Assembly (NCBI RefSeq): GCF_006345805.1
Contig: NC_043013.1
Coordinates: 43,028,001 to 43,092,000, forward strand
DNA from: Octopus sinensis
Lineage: Eukaryota
Length of the DNA: 64,000 nucleotides
Direction: 5' to 3'
Each line of letters opens with the position of its first letter. Position 1 is the first letter of the stretch. The notes beneath the pieces are model-generated. The model saw only the letters and a program-made list of their open reading frames with translations. It made no database searches and was not told where the DNA came from. Below are positions 2,914 through 59,777 of this stretch, one piece after another. A program made the position numbers and the translations under genes.

Positions 2914-5900
2914 GTTGGTTTTCATGTCATCTTTCCCACTGCTTTGATTCAAAGATGTCATTAGTTAAATGATCTTACTTCTCGGTAACAGATGTTGACA
3001 TCTTGACTGCAACTGGGGTCTACAACTGCCAATGGGAACAGATTTTCTTAAACCTTAAGTTAACCTGTTTAAGTAGGTTTTCTTCAGAGAACATCCTCTC
3101 ATGGCTAATCGTGAGTTATTTTAAAAGAGAATGTGTGTATGTGGTTTGGTTGTTAGATTCAGGTTCAAACTACTAATTACAGCAATGATAGACATTTTCC
3201 TAGTCTTCTTCATAAAACATGAGAATCTGCTGTAATGATTGTACTTTGGAAATACTATTAAACACATAGCCTGGGCTGTAATTGATCTGAACTTATCTGA
3301 GGTATATTTCCATTAGTTATTCATGTTTGAGACAAAAAGGAAAACCCACGTTTTCTCCTGGGTCATTTCTTAGTCTCTTAAAAGGTTGATGTAAATTGTT
3401 GTGAGTGTACATGTGATGGATGATACCAATGAGGATGTTTGCTAGGTAATGTTGCGCTAGTATTCATCATATTTTAGATGGTTATTGTAAACTATAGTTC
3501 ATGAACTAAAAAGGGCCAGCAAAGTGTTCGGGGGTTGGCTGGGGTCAGGAGTCTCAGTTGAAATATAATTGCACATTCTCAGAGTCAGATGTTAAGTGAT
3601 TACCAAATTACTGACGCATTCTCCACAGGAACAAATTAACCAATATCAAGAAGCCAAATTATCTGTTTTGACGAAGATGGCAACTACAATTGAAGCAGAG
3701 GAGATGGAGGAGGGATCCTGAAGTTCCCAAGAATAAAATGACAGGACTTAGTCAATGTTAGATAATAAATGTTTTTGACAAGATACAAATTGGAAGATGT
3801 TTGGAAAGCAAAAAGTCTGAGTTTAAGATTCCTGAATTCCAGCCATGTTCCTGCTAAATTAGCAGTTAATGTTTAGGGAATTCCACATTTCTTGCTGACT
3901 TCTTTTTAGCTTCATGAAGACTATAGTTCTTGTATTTTTGTACATTTTTCTTCATAAGTGTTGGTCACATGTTGCTGATGTGTGGTGTCAGTTGTTAGCT
4001 AGTTTAGGTAATCCATTTATTGTCTTCACCAATATCTTCATTTGAAATTAGTGTCTTTTGTATTCATTTATTCCTGAAAGGGGATAATAAATGACTATTA
4101 CAAAAACACATCTTTGCAGCAGGTAAGCTTCTTATATCATTATGCTTTCCCCTATATGCAATATGATGTTAATATAAATATTTATATTACTACATAGTGT
4201 GTGGAACGTCTATGCTTTGCTAAATATTAGTTATTCTATTGCATCATTCTTTCTCCCTTACATAATAAGAATTTCTTTAAGAAGTGCATATGTATATGTC
4301 TATATACATACATACATAGCCCTTATTTGTTTTCTTAAATATATATCTCTACAAATCTATTTAGAGTTAGGGTCCTAGAATGGAGTGATATTGTTTGACT
4401 TTGCTAATTATATTTAATTCATATGAATGATGAAAAATTGTTCCAATACACTTCTATGACATTCATTAGTGATAATCATCATTCTGATATTTCTCAATGA
4501 TTGTTTTATTGTTGCAGTTCTTCAGCTTCTAAACCCAAAGTTATCAAGAATATGAGAAGTAAGTTTTTTTTTATTATTCTACATGTTCTGAATCTTATTA
4601 TTCACTAAGCCTTTGTTTTAAATGTGAGGTATTTGAAATCTTAACCTTGAAGGGTCAGATTTCCTGGTAATCTTTCCATATTCATTTGTTTCTGTACTTC
4701 ACAGGCAATGACCAAAACAGTCGGAATTTGTGGGTCAGTGGTCTTGCCACAAGCACCCGTGCTACAGACCTTAAAGTGCTTTTTACCAAATATGGCAAGG
4801 TATGTTGAATAATATCTGTTTCTTATATTTCATGTAATTTGTTACTAATCATATTTATTACTAATTAGTACTTAGATTCACACTATGCTAGTCTAGAGTG
4901 TGTTTACACTCTAAACAACTCTCTCTTCTCCAAATGTAGTCACTGTCAGACCATCAGCACTCTCTGCTTTGTGTGTGGTTGTCCACAACACAAGCTCAAC
5001 ATACCTTCCCTGCTCACTTCAGGTTAGCCGACTGGTTAGAATTCCACCAGTTCTACACTATTTTCTTTGACACATGTACTTGACTCTGGACCCATCAGAG
5101 ACAGCTAGGTAGGTGACAGAAAACATACTCTTTGGCATGTCCCTTTATATCCCATGCAAAACCAAAATTGTCTCGGGTCCTCTAAGTGGTTCAGTCTTAG
5201 CTGTGTTGCAGCATTTCATGCAAAGCATACAGCCTGAAATACTTAGAGAAAAAGCACTCTTACAAACAAGGCAGCTTTCATGTAACATGAAATCTGCAAA
5301 ACTATCTGAAATGCAAAGGATTCTGCCATGTATGGTACAACTGGTAAGCTTTCTCATTTCCAAAAGCAACTACTGATCTTGTTTGTTTTCAAAACTGATT
5401 TGAGTCATCTTTGCAAAATCCTTCTCCTTTCCACTTCTCTGGTTCAGCAACCAGTACTCTTCAACAGGAAGCTTCTACAGGGATTGTTTACTTTGTATCC
5501 ATCTCTGCATTGCATACTCTAAGTAAATCTTCTCTCAAAACTTGTTTTCCCCTCCTCCACCACGTACATGCCAAATGCAAAATCTCTCCCAATCACCTCA
5601 AAACAATAATGCCTTTAGCCATGAAATCTGTAGCTAACCCTATCCTCACCAAACTCTTCAGTTTGACTCCATATATCCCAATCTTTGGATTCTTGTTACA
5701 ATATGTCCCATTTGCCGGAAATTACTCCAACCATCATCTTATTGCACTCACTTTCAATTTGTTAGAGATGATAGTCATAAATAACCTTCTCTAACACTCA
5801 GAATCCATCTCTCCCCTTGATGACCTCCACTACTGCTTATATAAAGCCAATCTACTGGAGACATGTTCTTCTTCATTCATCAGTAGGTTGGTAAGTTTTT

Positions 5901-11900: not shown

Positions 11901-14207
11901 AGAGAGAACATAAGGTTTGTTACAAGTGCATTCACATTTAAACTGTTTAAGGCAGAACAGCATGATTTTGTGAGAAAGAAGTTTACTTCACACCTCCATG
12001 ATACCAAATTCAGGGTCATTCTGCATCATATTGGACAGGTATTTCCTACCATAGTCTTAGGTTAGCCAATGCTTTCATAGATGGAAACTATGTTAAAAGC
12101 TGTCTGAAGGCCCAATCCTATTTTTGGTGGTAGAATTATTTTGTTGTCTTGTTTAAGACTACATCTGATCCTTAGGTGCCTTTAACAGAGTACACGCTTT
12201 ATCAAACATTCAGGCCTGGTCTCTAATCTGAGGATTACTTCTTCCCTTCTTCAAATTGGTCTTGGCAACACTGAGAAAACTCTTTAAATATTGCTATATT
12301 TTAAAAACTTAAGTATTTTTATGTTTTGAATAGTTTTTTACATAGTAATTGTGGATTAGAAGGAATTTGGAAATTTTAGCAATAAGAGAGCAAAGTCATT
12401 AAACTATCATTATCATCATCATCATTACTTAACATCTGCCTTCCACACTGGCATGGATTGGATGGTCAGGTAGGAGCCTGCACCAGACGTTTGTGTCTGT
12501 TTTGGCACATATTTTACAGCTGGATGCCCTTCCTAACACTAACCACCCAGCAAAGTGGACAGAAATGAATGGTAAAAATGTTAATGAATATATGAGAAGG
12601 AAATTAAAGATCACAATAAATAAGATGAATTCAGTGATATATTTATACTCTTTGTTCAAATTGCTTGATATCTTTAGTTTTAAGATCTGATAACCCAATG
12701 GATTAGTTGGACACCATTGTAATTTTGGGATAAAGAGAGGCTGAAATATTTGGAGTAGCTTTCCTCAATACCCTTTCAAAACCAAAGGAAGAATTGAACA
12801 TAGCAGTGAAAGTTAAAGAAATGATTGTCAGACAAACAGTTCCCCCTTAGTAACCTTACTTTTGAGTTGTTGTTTAGCTATCTTGCAGGCCTGTGATCAA
12901 AGGCCTTACAACTGTAACTCCCCCCTCCAATTTCTTTGTTATCTATAGGACTATATTATCTATGTATTTTGTGTTTTAAAATGAGAGGATGTTATATGAT
13001 AGCTGCACATGGTACTTATTAAGTGATTCATAAATGTTTACGACTAAAATGTCTTTGTCCAGCTTACAGTGATGTTAGCCTATTGTTTAGCAGCCTGATG
13101 CTTTTATTATTTTGTCCACCTGACTTTGCTTTCTTCTGCTTACCTTTGTGGTTTCTGTATAGATTACTCAACTACATCTGACCTTCCTAATATTTAAGGT
13201 CCATGAAGTGACATTTGGATAAATACGTAATTTCCCCTACATTCAGAAGAATGTCTCTTGGGTATTCTTGCAGAGTAACAGGTGTCAAGTTGGTGTGTGT
13301 AGGCAGGGATATTTCTTTTTTATTTTCTGTTGAAATTCTCTGTTGTCTTTATATTCTTTCGCACTTTTCAGATTAGAGAAAATGAAATTGGAAAAAATGA
13401 AACTGGAAAAAGAGAAACTGTTAAGATACAAAATGGAAAAAGAACTTCTTGAAATAAAAAGGCGTGATGTAGAGATGCATTCAGCTGAGATGTTACGGTA
13501 AGTGAGACAGATTATGTTGTTACTGTTACAGAAACTGAAGAAGGAGGCCATAAGATTGGACAGTGTTAGAGAGAAGATAAGGTTTGTTAAAAGTGCATTC
13601 ACATTGAAACTGCTTAAGACAGAATTGCATAATTGTGTGGGTAAGAAGTTTCCTTCACACCTCCATAATATCAAATTCAGTGTCATTGTGAATCATTTTG
13701 GATGGGTGTTTTCTGACATAGTCTTGGGTTGACCAATGCTTTCATAAGTGGAAACTAGGCGATCTTTTGATATGAGAACTGTGTTTGTGACTTTTTAAAG
13801 CACGTGTATTTGCTTGTTTCTGAAGAAGATTGTCACTTTTTATTTTTTTACATATGTGGGGTGAGGGGAAAGGGGATCTTTTGAAGTCGGCATGAAAGCA
13901 AGGGACTGAGAGAGCGCAATTGGATCAGGGAAGTTCTTTTCAAGTTGGCATGCCGTATGTGTGTGTGTGTTTGATGGGGTGTGTGAAAGAGAAAGTGTGG
14001 TTTGTATGTGAAGTTCTTTTGTTAGTGTGTGTGAAGAGACACAGAGTAATGTTGCAGGTGTGTGTGTATGTGAGAGAGGTTATGTATGTATGTATGAATG
14101 GCTTCAGTGACTACGCTCTTCCACAGAAAGGAACAAGGAGAGAAAAGAAAATAAAGAATGTGTAGTGGCTAGTGATCTATCATGGCACATTTATGTGTGT
14201 GTGTGTG

Positions 14208-14239
<32 letters not shown>

Positions 14240-17200
14240 GATACATCCATTTATGCATATATATATATAGATACATACATATATATCTATATATATGTGT
14301 GTGTGTGTGTGTGTCACTGAAGCCATTCATACATACATAGAGAACCTCTCTCTCTCTCTCTCTCACATACACACACACACAAACACACGGCATGCCAACT
14401 TCAAAAGAACTTCCCCGATCCAATCTTGCTCTCTCTGTCTCTTTTGCTTTTATGCCAACTTCAAATGATCCTCTTCTCCCCACCCCACATATATGAAAAA
14501 AAAATTTTAATTTTTACGGAAAGCGACAATCTTCTTCAGAAACATAAACAAATACATGTGCATTGTTTTTGACAACTATAGTACTCATAACGTAATTTAG
14601 CCAGAAACTATGTTTAAAGCTGTCTGAGGTGGGACCATCCCTGTTTTTGCTGGTACTATTATTGTGTTGTTCTCTTTAAGAGCACATCTGATCCTTGGAT
14701 GCCCTTTGCAGAGTACACACTTTTTCAAGCTTTCAGTCCAGGTCTCTAATCTAAGGATAGCTTCTTCCCTTCTTCTAATCAGTCTTGGGGACGCTGAAAA
14801 AACATACCTTGGGTTCTGCTCTTCCTTTTATAAGCCACAAAACCATTTTAAAGATCTTTTAGATAGTAATTGTGATTTATGAAGAATTTGGAAATTTTCA
14901 CAAAAGCAGGGCTAAGACATTTTAAATGAATGGTAAAAGAAAGAAAAAAAGTAAAGATTAGAGCATGTAAGATATATTAAGTGGTTTCTTTTTTTAACTA
15001 TTAAGTAACGTGTAAATATTGGGTTCAAAATTTTATATTCTCTGTTGAGGCAAGTGAGAATCAGAATCAAAATTAAAATCGATCAACATCAATGGAAATT
15101 GTAGCTGTGATACCAGTGCCGGTGGCACGTAAGCGAACCATCTGAACATGGCCGTTGCCAGCCTTGCCTGGCCCCCGTGCCGGTGGCACGTAAAAAGCAC
15201 CATCCGATCATGGCCATTGCCAGCCTCGCCTGGCCCCAGTGCCAGTGGCACGTAAAAAGCACCATCCGACCGTGGCCGTTTGCCAGCCCCGTCTGGCACG
15301 TAAAAAGCACCCACTACACTCACGGAGTGGTTGGCATTAGGAAGGGCATCCAGCTGTAGAAACATTGCCAGATCAAACTGGGCCTGGTGCAGCCTTCTGG
15401 CCTCCCAGACCCCTAGTTGAACCGTCCAATCCATGCTAGCATGGAAAGCGGACGCTAAATGGTGATGATGATGTTTAAATTGTATTATCTCTTGATAAGT
15501 TTTTCTTAAGATTTAATAATCCACTGGTTGGGTTGGATACCATTGTAAATTTTAGCCTATGTTTCGGGATAAAGAGAAGCTGACATATTTGGAGCAGTTT
15601 TTCTCGATACCCTTTCAAGAGATGATTATTAGACAGTTTCTCTGTTCTTGTAGTGAACTTTTCTTTGTATTGTTATCATTCAGGCCTATGATCAAAGGCC
15701 TTATAAGTTTAACTGTCACGCCCGCCCTTTTTGTGGGGAGGGTATCTGTAGTACTATATTATTTATGTATTTTGTGTTTGAAAATGATAGCTCCACATGG
15801 TACTTATTAAGTGTTGGGTGAATCTTTATTTAAGGCTGAAGTCTCTTTGTCCATCTCACAGTGATGATAGTTTGTTGTTTAGCAGACTGATACTCTATCT
15901 ATTATTTTATCTACGTAACTCACTTCCCTTTTCCAAGGGGTGAAATGTGTTTTTAAAGGTGACAGATACTTAATTTCCTCTAGTTTCAAAAGAACGTTTC
16001 TTGGATATTCTGGCAGAGTAACATGTCAGGGTAGATACAAGTTGATGAGTATAGGCAAGGATTGTCAGTTTTATTTTTATTTTCTGTTTAAATTCTTAAT
16101 GTTATCTTTATATTCTTTCATATTTTTCAGGTTAGAGAGAATGAAATTGGAGAAAATGAAGCTGGAGAAAGAGAAATTATTAAGATACAGGATGGAAAAA
16201 GAACTTCTGGAAATGGAAAGGCGTGATGTAGAGATGCGGTAAGTGAGATAAGTTATGTTGTTACTCTTATGCTGTGAACTTAATGATGAATTTTTATCCG
16301 TAACATAATGTAAATATTGGGTTAAGAACCCTTTTGGACAGGAAACACCAAAAGGCTGCTCTTGAGCATGAACCTACATCTGTAAATTTGACAGATATTC
16401 TACCATTGTCCGACAGGCAGCCTTTGACTTTTTCTATCCCAAAACGTTTTGAACCCAATATTTACATGTCATTATTTTGTAGCTTCATCTTCTTCGAGCT
16501 CTACAGATAAGAATGAATTATTTCACATCCTCTCAAAGTTTCTAAATACTTATGATAAACTTATTGCTTTTTTTTTCTTGGTGTCTTTGATACAACCTAT
16601 TTGATTGAATTATATTTTATTTACCCTTGGATAATTTCATGTTTGTTTTGTTTGTTGGATTGGGGATTAGGATGTAGGACTTTTCCTAATTGTGGAAAGT
16701 AATCTCAAATGGGATTCTTGTGTATGTAAAGATGTTGTAATGCTGATCTGTTGATCTCATCATAGAGGAAGCAAAACAATGAACCAGTGGTGTTCACATC
16801 ACTTCTGACCTAACTTATCCATTGGCCTAAACACAACCATTCATCATCATCATCACATAATGTCCGTTTCCCTGCTGGCATGGGTTGGACGGTTTCACAG
16901 GAACTGGCCAGTCAGAGAGCTGCACTAGTGTCCATTTGTCTGTTTTGGCATAGTATCTATGACTGGATGCCTTTCCTAATGCAACCACTTTACAGAATGT
17001 ACCAGGTGCTTTTTACGGAGCAACAACATGGATGCTTCACATGTGGCTCTAGCACAGGTGCTTTTCAGGTGGCAGTCACATTAATAAAAAAAAACAGCAA
17101 CAAAACCACTTTGTGGAAGCATGTATGTGTTGTAGCAGCTTGATCTGCTAGCAATAACAGCCAAATCGCCATATTCCACTGCTCATGACTGAAATGAGTA

Positions 17201-24566: not shown

Positions 24567-59777
<35,211 letters not shown>

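Follow-up and report, generated by a model that had tools for sequence, protein, structure and literature searches.

The comparisons presented here point to a non-coding module of about 300 nt in coleoid SAFB-family genes, located in the intron that separates the SAP-RRM linker exon from the pre-RRM micro-exon and kept for hundreds of millions of years. Since every version of the module that uses the donor following position 4122 interrupts the reading frame, its most economical reading is that of a stop-introducing alternative exon, with an acceptor among the candidate AGs ending at 3842, 3909, 4051 and 4080; we judge this reading to have somewhat under an even chance of being right. In the proposed scheme, the module would be a cassette exon breaking the reading frame (a 'poison' exon), with its donor at 4122/4123 in copy A and 41604/41605 in copy B (here and below, slashes within sequences mark splice borders). 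Because the interruption precedes more than 10 exon junctions, the inclusion product would be either degraded by nonsense-mediated decay (NMD) or a SAP-plus-linker protein devoid of the RRM. The module would act in the context of a second element, composed of a purine-rich exon end, a weak donor (AG/GTTGGT) and 85 conserved intronic bases, and the arrangement would render tunable the choice between normal splicing, module inclusion and intron retention. We infer that the module is spliced into RNA, with ensuing NMD, and that this choice is controlled by the SAFB family.

The window is a stretch of 64,000 nt from chromosome C17 of Octopus sinensis, and copies A and B are two SAFB paralogues within it. 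The O. sinensis genome harbors at least seven SAFB paralogues. A search of the whole genome (2.72 Gb) retrieved six occurrences of the module block, each in the same intron of a SAFB paralogue and all on the same chromosome; the seventh, divergent paralogue has lost the block. The initial annotation, which described a 42-nt poison exon in both SAFB paralogues, was thus correct in that A and B carry the block, but the family is larger than two and the block is found in six of its members. The intron bearing the module is 1.6 kb long in A and 2.4 kb in B, and more than 10 coding exons follow it. The features of the two introns are as follows (positions in the window):

3821-3842, + strand: pyrimidine tract and CAG acceptor candidate of copy A (AG at 3841-3842), where the conservation of the module starts
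3843-4122, + strand: 280-nt candidate for the long alternative exon in copy A, with boundaries matching the edges of the conserved block
3893-3924, + strand: E2 core, TGCTGACYTCTTTTTAGCTTCATGAAGACTAT, holding a second acceptor candidate (AG at 3908-3909) and 84% identical to decapodiform contigs
4081-4122, + strand: 42-nt segment of the initial annotation in copy A, GGGATAATAAATGACTATTACAAAAACACATCTTTGCAGCAG, with AG at 4079-4080 before it and GTAAGC after it
4120-4128, + strand: near-consensus 5' splice site CAG/GTAAGC (GT at 4123-4124), agreeing with 8 of 9 consensus positions
4518-4558, + strand: constitutive pre-RRM micro-exon of copy A (41 nt), matching RefSeq protein P0005
41328-41604, + strand: candidate long exon of copy B, 277 nt; it contains 41563-41604 and is followed by a donor GT at 41605-41606
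41563-41604, + strand: 42-nt segment of the initial annotation in copy B, with AG at 41561-41562 before it and GTAAGC after it
42866-42900, + strand: constitutive pre-RRM micro-exon of copy B (35 nt; compare P0011/P0012, ...KSKSSLVS.PKAAKKG)

The module (about 3834-4134 in A) is 90.6% identical between A and B, and is thus more conserved than the coding exons of the RRM (62-68%) or the remainder of the intron (69% over 2999-3835 and 58% in the 150 nt 3' of the module). The figures of the initial annotation were reproduced here: the roughly 240 nt upstream of the 42-nt segment, said to be about 90% identical, are 91.5% identical over 3845-4080; the single mismatch reported in the last 85 nt or so before the AG is found as 79 identical positions out of 80 over 4001-4080; and the segment itself, put at about 83%, has 35 of 42 positions in common (83.3%), above the level of the ordinary intron. 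The conservation begins at the pyrimidine tract and CAG, and alignability drops within about 12 nt past the near-consensus donor, both between paralogues and against Argonauta. Such edges, coinciding with an acceptor-like and a donor-like signal, are what an exon accompanied by its splice signals would show. The donor CAG/GTAAGC is unchanged in six O. sinensis and two O. bimaculoides copies and reads TAG/GTAAGG in Argonauta; the AG ending at 3842 is the sole acceptor candidate kept throughout, in all seven octopod sequences.

Part of this identity could have arisen by gene conversion, and a reading without any function, in which a conversion patch between paralogues happens to contain splice-like signals, has to be considered. 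The identity between paralogues is indeed patchy, with a 224-nt stretch spanning the upstream exon-intron border about 100% identical among all copies, and near-identical twins of both A and B occur at other places in the paralogue cluster. However, the same elements are found in Argonauta and in decapodiforms, beyond the reach of conversion between Octopus paralogues, and conversion alone is thus insufficient. Argonauta hians has the 5' part of the module, the pyrimidine tract with its AG and the near-consensus donor; identity is 79% over 3821-3842 against a background of about 52%, and 69-79% over 3821-3925. The segment around the E2 core (3845-3925) is 95-99% identical among Octopus copies, including the O. 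bimaculoides orthologues, and 69% identical to Argonauta; in O. bimaculoides it stands above the local neutral level (99% vs 93%). The 32-nt E2 core is recognized in both decapodiform contigs (E=0.002 and 0.017), collinear with the upstream element E1 described below, and the motif CTTCCTG..TAG/YCAT can be discerned in both. The initial annotation had proposed that absence of the block from other cephalopods would leave conversion as the explanation; these alignments argue against it. No homology to the module was found in the corresponding intron of the gastropod Gigantopelta. The conserved block is evidently under constraint, beyond what paralogue conversion would produce, and the functionless reading is extremely improbable and largely refuted. 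This constraint is unevenly distributed: over 3926-4122 Argonauta is 48-52% identical, equal to the intronic background, and the 3' two-thirds of the module, if an exon, thus seem mostly unconstrained in that lineage.

The four acceptor candidates would give exons of 280, 213, 71 and 42 nt. Since the junction finder yielded 10 junctions from this gene family, too few for a splice-site matrix, the strength of splice sites was judged qualitatively. The shortest version is the 42-nt cassette exon exactly as proposed initially, a special case of the stop-introducing exon in which the 240 or so conserved bases upstream would be intronic regulatory sequence. The AG-flanked segment followed by CAG/GTAAGC was recovered at the same positions in both copies. 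It has AG, GT and an in-frame stop in A, B, L009, the A-type copy of O. bimaculoides and, shifted by 1 nt, Argonauta; a 28-nt pyrimidine-rich tract free of AG precedes it, and strong conservation of the intron sequence upstream is typical of very short alternative exons. In one decapodiform contig, ATTAG/GTGATAATAG reads AGG TGA TAA TAG, as in copy B. Against these points, its acceptor is AAG/G, and an A at position -3 is rare and disfavored. The AG is gone (AAAT/GGG) in L010 and its O. bimaculoides orthologue, which keep the remaining module, and the cuttlefish-like contig L013 has TTTTTG/GTGATAATAAA, with no AG preceding the homologous motif GGTGATAATAAA. The segment is also the most variable part of the module: copy A is 74% identical to L010, 51% to Argonauta and 76% to A's own orthologue in O. 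bimaculoides, where 8 nt are deleted, and the length of the segment across copies and species is 42, 42, 39, 36, 34 and 46 nt. Moreover, identity to Argonauta does not rise above background (52%) over the 80 nt that precede the segment, and its pyrimidine tract is buried in a predicted stable hairpin. An acceptor at 4080/4081 is possible in some copies, but it is the weakest and least conserved of the candidates; the exon probably does not start at 4081, and a 42-nt exon with precisely these boundaries is quite unlikely. The segment is better described as the 3' end of the larger module. What persists of the poison-exon proposal, as far as sequence can tell, is a constrained block with a donor and a break of the frame.

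The linker exon ends in phase 2 at 2913 in A and 40443 in B (...AAG TCG AAG AG/GTTGGT), in a frame consistent with the RefSeq proteins (...DVKSK/SSSASKPK). Because it leaves two codon bases, inclusion of the 42-nt segment would read AGG GGA TAA TAA in A and AGG TGA TAA TAA in B, in agreement with the initial annotation as to both the phase and the stop codons. The candidate 280-nt exon reads AGC CAT GTT CCT GCT AAA TTA GCA GTT AAT GVT TAG-type, its in-frame stop being codon 12. When the four acceptors are combined with the seven octopod sequences, an in-frame stop is reached 2-46 codons past the linker exon in 25 of the 28 combinations; a frameshift results from the remaining three, in which the 4052 acceptor is paired with B, with L010 or with the L016 copy of O. 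bimaculoides. For nearly all acceptors the stop is situated more than about 50 nt upstream of a downstream exon junction, and more than 10 junctions follow. This poison property is not evidence in itself, as in-frame stops are expected by chance in AT-rich non-coding sequence. Searches of the protein collection with a near-full-length model, with the linker joined to the predicted tail and with the micro-exon plus RRM retrieved no ORF ending in KSKRG, KSKR or another tail encoded by the module; their informative matches were only genomic ORFs reading through the donor (P0121, P0122 and P0124), which served as orthologous intron sequence.

The conservation of the in-frame TAA TAA is likewise not specific to a stop function, because the same bases form an AATAAA signal and belong to the 3' arm of a hairpin:

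4086-4091, + strand: AATAAA hexamer of copy A, a canonical poly(A) signal, coinciding with the TAA TAA of the initial annotation (41568-41573 in copy B)
4051-4109, + strand: predicted local RNA hairpin (-17.4 kcal/mol, z=-4.3)

None of 200 shuffled sequences folds as well as this hairpin. Its 5' arm is the pyrimidine tract before the 4080/4081 acceptor, its loop (CUGAAAG) holds the AG, and the 42-nt segment contributes its initial 29 nt as the 3' arm. In six Octopus copies 93% of the cells are paired, against 38-57% in slid controls, with one compensatory pair and with indels located in loops; the hairpin is absent from Argonauta. As for the hexamer, A, B, L010, the two O. bimaculoides copies and the cuttlefish-like contig have AATAAA; it is replaced by ATTAAA in L009 and by AATAGA in the decapodiform contig L014, and absent from Argonauta. 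The hexamer and the hairpin are both possible reasons, other than splicing, for the conservation of the 3' part of the module.

The module might then be an alternative terminal exon with intronic polyadenylation, entered by splicing from 2913 to one of its acceptors, cleavage about 15-25 nt past the AATAAA yielding a stable short SAP-plus-linker mRNA; through U1 snRNP bound at the adjacent strong 5' splice site, 31 nt downstream, the poly(A) site would be suppressed or face competition. That U1 can control poly(A) sites in its vicinity is established. AATAAA or ATTAAA occupies the same place in nine of 11 sequences, followed, by inspection, by a U-rich stretch; the sole substitution in Octopus is to ATTAAA, the commonest functional variant of the signal, and GGTGATAATAAA is common to Octopus copy B and the cuttlefish-like contig. 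These observations have to be set against the absence of the hexamer from Argonauta and its alteration in the second decapodiform contig, the frequency with which AATAAA occurs by chance in AT-rich introns, and the base-pairing of the hexamer within the predicted hairpin. Furthermore, a terminal exon has no need of an invariant consensus donor just downstream. We regard intronic polyadenylation as a decidedly unlikely explanation, and the stop-introducing exon spliced at the 4122 donor is preferred.

At the other end of the intron, the following features are found:

2774-2913, + strand: 3'-terminal 140 nt of copy A's large linker exon (SAP-RRM), with 98.6% A-B identity
2914-2998, + strand: element E1 of copy A, defined by conservation, comprising the non-consensus donor GTTGGT and the first 85 nt of the intron
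40305-40528, + strand: invariant linker exon end (to 40443) and E1 (40444-40528) of copy B

The exon end (about 140 nt) and E1 (85 nt), which were not listed in the initial annotation, are more strongly conserved between A and B (98.6-100%) than the block itself. Closer to its 5' end, this exon shows an A-B identity of 57%, and the exon end is near-invariant across the six paralogues. E1 is identical in A and B, 88.5% identical to Argonauta and 88% identical to the decapodiform contig L014 over 83 nt (E=1e-21). The donor has a pyrimidine at +3 and is non-consensus, and it is conserved along with the adjoining intron sequence. AAGAG/GTTGGTTT is found in the gastropod Gigantopelta too, and the corresponding translation ...K/R[LFS]V was seen in 13 genomic ORFs. 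The weak donor long predates the module. A weak and anciently conserved upstream donor is the pattern expected of a regulated splice choice, and AG/GTYKGT is a candidate regulated splice site that would be much older than the cephalopods.

These observations also bear on the possibility that the module is never an exon but regulates at the RNA level from within the intron, for instance as a decoy 5' splice site, through binding sites for proteins or by way of the hairpin, and, with E1, would tune the removal of the intron, the unproductive product being an intron-retaining RNA. Such a role would fit the shortness of the deepest-conserved pieces (E1, the 32-nt E2 core and the donor-like 9-mer), the greater age of the weak donor and the significant hairpin conserved in Octopus within the module; in octopods and decapodiforms alike, 12 codons of read-through into the intron lead to a stop. 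It does not, however, explain why the edges of conservation match acceptor-like and donor-like signals. The predicted long-range duplex between E1 and E2 is no better than in shuffled controls, E1 on its own folds no better than its shuffles (z=-0.2), and no global structure is apparent. An exclusively intronic role is thus unlikely, and E1 is instead viewed here as the putative context in which the stop-introducing exon would be chosen.

Autoregulation can only be conjectured, and what speaks for it is circumstantial. The invariant linker exon end is 79% purine and contains eight GAAGA/AAGAA pentamers, four of them in its last 60 nt; unlike it, the module is U-rich (42% purine). In mammals, GAAGA/AAGAA is the iCLIP motif of SAFB1, which binds it close to exon ends (PMC4689037).

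Could the block act instead at the DNA level, as an intronic enhancer or as an internal promoter whose non-coding first exon would end at 4122 and give rise to SAP-less transcripts? Its 5' part contains, by eye, palindromes typical of sites for dimeric transcription factors, CTGCTAAATTAGCAG and the Rel/NF-kB-like GGGAATTCC; in A, L010 and the O. bimaculoides orthologue of L010, an ATG within the segment shares the frame of the ORF downstream. In B, L009, the A-type copy of O. bimaculoides and Argonauta, this ATG is either missing or in another frame, and decapodiforms do not retain the palindromes. Moreover, the conservation begins abruptly at the acceptor-like signal, with nothing upstream as a promoter would need. 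A DNA-level element is very improbable.

Several other classes of element were considered and rejected. A transposable element or dispersed repeat is ruled out by the count of six copies in the genome, in SAFB paralogues only. For a structured non-coding RNA gene, there was no Rfam match below E=0.1, and the fold of the whole block has z=-1.2; for a canonical pri-miRNA, the local hairpin is too short (about 23 bp with a 5-nt loop) and is not kept in Argonauta. Recursive, zero-length-exon splice sites are YAG/GTAAG juxtapositions within very long introns; the juxtaposition TTTGCAGCAG/GTAAGC is present here, in introns of only 1.6 kb (A) and 2.4 kb (B), and one decapodiform contig has TTGG/GTAAAA at this site, without AG. 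The 48-codon open frame at 3899-4045 is U-rich, would encode a hydrophobic product and is not preserved in Argonauta or across indels. An alternative first exon with an in-frame ATG is contradicted by the presence of this ATG in just three of seven octopod sequences. A C/D-box snoRNA before the micro-exon (4421-4492) reached Rfam E values of 0.15-0.2, and its boxes are destroyed in the O. bimaculoides orthologue. Finally, a tRNA-derived SINE was considered in the intron of B, where ARAGORN detected no tRNA.

Taken as a whole, the stop-introducing exon, the weak donor and E1 may constitute a dedicated switch for unproductive splicing or premature termination, present in every functional coleoid SAFB paralogue since before the split of octopuses from squid and cuttlefish, built upon an older donor common to gastropods and other invertebrates, and setting either the dosage of SAFB or the ratio of full-length to SAP-only protein. 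We advance this broader proposal tentatively, as a possibility short of what we would expect. If true, SAFB/SLTM would gain its first described circuit of post-transcriptional autoregulation in any animal, and lophotrochozoans one of their few documented poison exons with deep conservation. SAFB proteins connect RNA processing with transcription and chromatin; conserved poison exons and their logic are known mainly from vertebrate SR and hnRNP genes, and the RNA biology of cephalopods is noted for being unusual. Provided that the module is used, this logic would extend to another family of RNA-binding proteins and to cephalopods, and would have been kept through repeated gene duplication despite the strong divergence of the RRM.

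The closest known systems are the poison exons of SR genes (SRSF3/SRSF7, TRA2B) and hnRNP genes. As in these, a conserved non-coding intronic block bounded by splice signals lies in a gene for an RNA-binding protein, contains in-frame stops far upstream of the last junction, is conserved above parts of the coding sequence and is found in several paralogues. The differences are that the body of the putative octopus exon is weakly conserved outside Octopus, whereas the classical cases are ultraconserved throughout; that inclusion, NMD sensitivity and autoregulation are, in the octopus case, predictions from sequence; and that the gene family is SAFB/SLTM and the lineage cephalopod. The literature searched describes no poison exon or dosage control by unproductive splicing in SAFB/SLTM. 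The intronic polyadenylation switches of CSTF3/su(f), PCF11 and IgM, together with U1 suppression, are similar in having an AATAAA near a strong 5' splice site within a conserved module, and the predicted octopus product would likewise be truncated and lack a downstream domain. However, Argonauta and one decapodiform contig do not share the octopus hexamer, and in the IgM composite exon the poly(A) signal is downstream of the donor, whereas in the octopus module it is upstream. The detained or retained introns of genes for RNA-binding proteins are also reminiscent of the present arrangement, with a weak conserved donor, conserved adjacent intron sequence and retention leading to an early stop; they would account for E1, but not for a distal module with its own consensus donor.

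The window (43,028,001-43,092,000 of C17, a chromosome-scale contig of Octopus sinensis) carries two tandem SAFB-family genes on its plus strand. Their exon order, linker, then micro-exon (4518-4558 in A, 42866-42900 in B), then RRM exons, is borne out by RefSeq proteins, as is the end of the linker exon two bases into a codon.

Copy A, plus strand: 5' end cut off by the window; linker exon ends at 2913; last coding exon near 20.25 kb
Copy B, plus strand: SAP exon at ~24.57 kb; linker exon 39,950-40,443

These genes belong to a cluster of at least seven on C17 (42.87-43.10 Mb; three on the minus strand, four on the plus; the window copies, L007-L010 and L015), in which A and B have near-identical twins, L007 and L008. 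The twins stem either from a recent segmental duplication in inverted orientation or from an artefact of assembly. In O. bimaculoides the L010-type and A-type genes are adjacent, in the same order. An internal tandem duplication in copy A (13223-13491, 15966-16249) includes one coding exon, and both exon copies are present in the RefSeq protein P0001.

In the intron between linker exon and micro-exon, the initial annotation had proposed a 42-nt poison exon (4081-4122 in A, 41563-41604 in B). Its sequence description holds throughout: the AG-flanked segment and its donor are present in both copies, A and B are 91.5% identical over 3845-4080 with one mismatch in 4001-4080, the segment itself matches at 35 of 42 positions, and the rest of the intron reaches only 58-69%. 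The six-way paralogue alignment delimits a larger conserved module (~3834 to 4134), which seven-way alignments with Argonauta hians and two loci from O. bimaculoides show as well. Conservation starts at a pyrimidine tract with CAG (AG 3841-3842) and stops ~12 nt past an invariant CAG/GTAAGC (GT 4123-4124; slashes mark splice junctions). This non-coding module is 90.6% identical between A and B, far above the coding RRM exons of the same gene pair (43049-43153 and 46889-47041 in B), which reach only 62-68% in nucleotides; NRNLWVSGFPANVSDKF is an example of the diverged copy B RRM sequence, and the RRM is changing rapidly in this B-type ('SLTM-like') paralogue.

The module is not a repeat: across the entire 2.72-Gb genome, a search found six copies, all at this intron in SAFB paralogues and within 200 kb on C17. 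A protein-coding module was rejected since no reading frame is conserved, as was a SAP-less protein from an in-frame ATG, which only three of seven octopod sequences possess. A seventh, divergent paralogue just past the window (L015 2608-6040; C17:43,098,073 onward) keeps the intron start (85%) and lacks the module; repeats and microsatellites fill its intron, its micro-exon is unrelated in sequence, and the gene may be undergoing decay or have neofunctionalised. The copy B intron exceeds that of A by ~800 nt, made up of a repeat-like insertion of higher GC content and, after it, a long (TA)n microsatellite (42180-42690); ARAGORN found no tRNA-like gene there. A C/D-box snoRNA-like sequence (TGATGA ... 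CTGA) at 4421-4492, ~30 nt 5' of the micro-exon acceptor, matches Rfam SNORD73 and SNORD101 weakly (E 0.15-0.2); paralogue L009 keeps the boxes, the O. bimaculoides orthologue has mutations in both, copy B lacks the sequence, and it is probably not functional.

Pure gene conversion would explain the likeness among paralogues, but comparison between species makes it a highly improbable account. In Argonauta the acceptor region and first 80 nt of the module show 69-79% identity versus ~52% for alignable intron, and the donor is kept, the remaining 200 nt being at background. Two decapodiform genomic contigs, one cuttlefish-like, which could be recovered because gene models run on past the donor, match the initial 83 nt of the intron (88%, E=1e-21) and, collinear with it, a 32-nt module core (A 3893-3924, 84%); the rest of the intron has no further alignable sequence in them. 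Orthologues of O. sinensis and O. bimaculoides share 99% identity over 3845-3925, against ~93% in neutral intron. The module as a whole is therefore not absent from other cephalopods, an absence that the initial annotation would have taken to indicate conversion only; the module is under constraint, and conversion alone does not account for the likeness.

A second, older element precedes the module. It combines the final ~140 nt of the linker exon, which are 79% purine and contain eight GAAGA/AAGAA pentamers, with the 85 nt that open the intron; identity is 98.6-100% among all paralogues, and conservation across coleoids is strong. The donor is non-consensus, AG/GTTGGT, with a pyrimidine at +3 (A 2908-2925, B 40438-40455); the homologous exon of the gastropod Gigantopelta ends AAGAG/GTTGGTTT (L017 17560-17585), and 13 genomic ORFs of other taxa in a representative library continue across the equivalent junction as ...K/R[LFS]V, which fits GTTGGT, GTTTGT or GTCTGT. 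The donor is conserved far beyond cephalopods, as expected of a regulated splice choice when a weak site is kept so long, and may represent an ancient point of splicing regulation in SAFB genes. GAAGA/AAGAA motifs close to exon ends are targets of mammalian SAFB1 (PMC4689037), so it is conceivable that SAFB proteins bind their own linker exon.

With the donor at 4122 fixed, four AGs were scored as acceptors.

AG ending 3842: 280-nt exon in A; CAG in all Octopus copies, TAG in Argonauta
AG ending 3909: 213-nt exon in A; kept in octopods, absent in decapodiforms
AG ending 4051: 71-nt exon in A; kept in Octopus copies, absent in Argonauta
AG ending 4080: 42-nt exon in A; initial annotation's choice, context AAG/G

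All four versions break the frame, by an in-frame stop in nearly all and a frameshift in the remainder. The 3842-type acceptor has decapodiform counterparts, CCTGTAG and CCCGTTAG, inside a recognisable CTTCCTG motif. The 4080 AG is replaced by AAAT/GGG in L010 and its O. bimaculoides orthologue, both of which retain the rest of the module; the cuttlefish-like contig lacks an equivalent (TTTTTG/GTGATAATAAA), while the other decapodiform contig does have an AG there (ATTAG/GTGATAATAG). The 42-nt version is therefore possible for some copies but not indicated by conservation: the segment is the least conserved stretch of the module (83% A-B, 74% A-L010, 67% B-L010), its length varies among sequences (42, 42, 39, 36, 34 and 46 nt), and the A segment is 76% identical to the O. 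bimaculoides equivalent, in which 8 nt are deleted. We regard the exact 42-nt exon as unlikely. In the cuttlefish-like contig (L013 1597-1668), an acceptor CATGAG/ and a donor CTTAG/GTATAAGC would delimit a 72-nt open, frame-preserving exon encoding SLFGDNKIFQMSMMHDFRTTNANL. In at least one species, then, a version of the module is conceivable that is no poison exon.

The 3' part of the module bears on two other readings. GATAATAAA reads both as a pair of in-frame stops and as a canonical poly(A) signal, with ATTAAA (L009) as the sole Octopus variant, as an intronic polyadenylation exon would have it; the signal is absent in Argonauta and degenerate in one decapodiform contig, and we consider such an exon unlikely. 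A predicted hairpin (A 4051-4109, B 41533-41591; -17.4 kcal/mol, z=-4.3) joins the pyrimidine tract that leads up to the 4080 AG to the 5'-most 29 nt of the segment, sequestering the tract, the AG (in the loop) and AATAAA. It is kept in six Octopus copies (93% of cells paired versus 38-57% in slid controls), with one compensatory pair and indels confined to loops, is absent in Argonauta, and could by itself account for A and B being nearly identical over 4001-4080. An intronic regulatory element that is never used as an exon would suit such a structure and the conserved intron start; no fold of the whole module or of the first 85 nt of the intron was better than shuffles, no pairing between the two exceeded shuffles, and Rfam gave no match for the module. 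We regard this element as unlikely, though the likeliest of the rivals, and one acting at the DNA level as very unlikely.

The poison-exon reading of the initial annotation thus survives in modified form: the most likely interpretation, which we hold tentatively, is that the module is a stop-introducing alternative exon using the 4122 donor and an acceptor 5' of the one proposed. No poison exon in SAFB or SLTM is described in the literature searched; if real, the SAFB-family module would add to the known stop-introducing exons.
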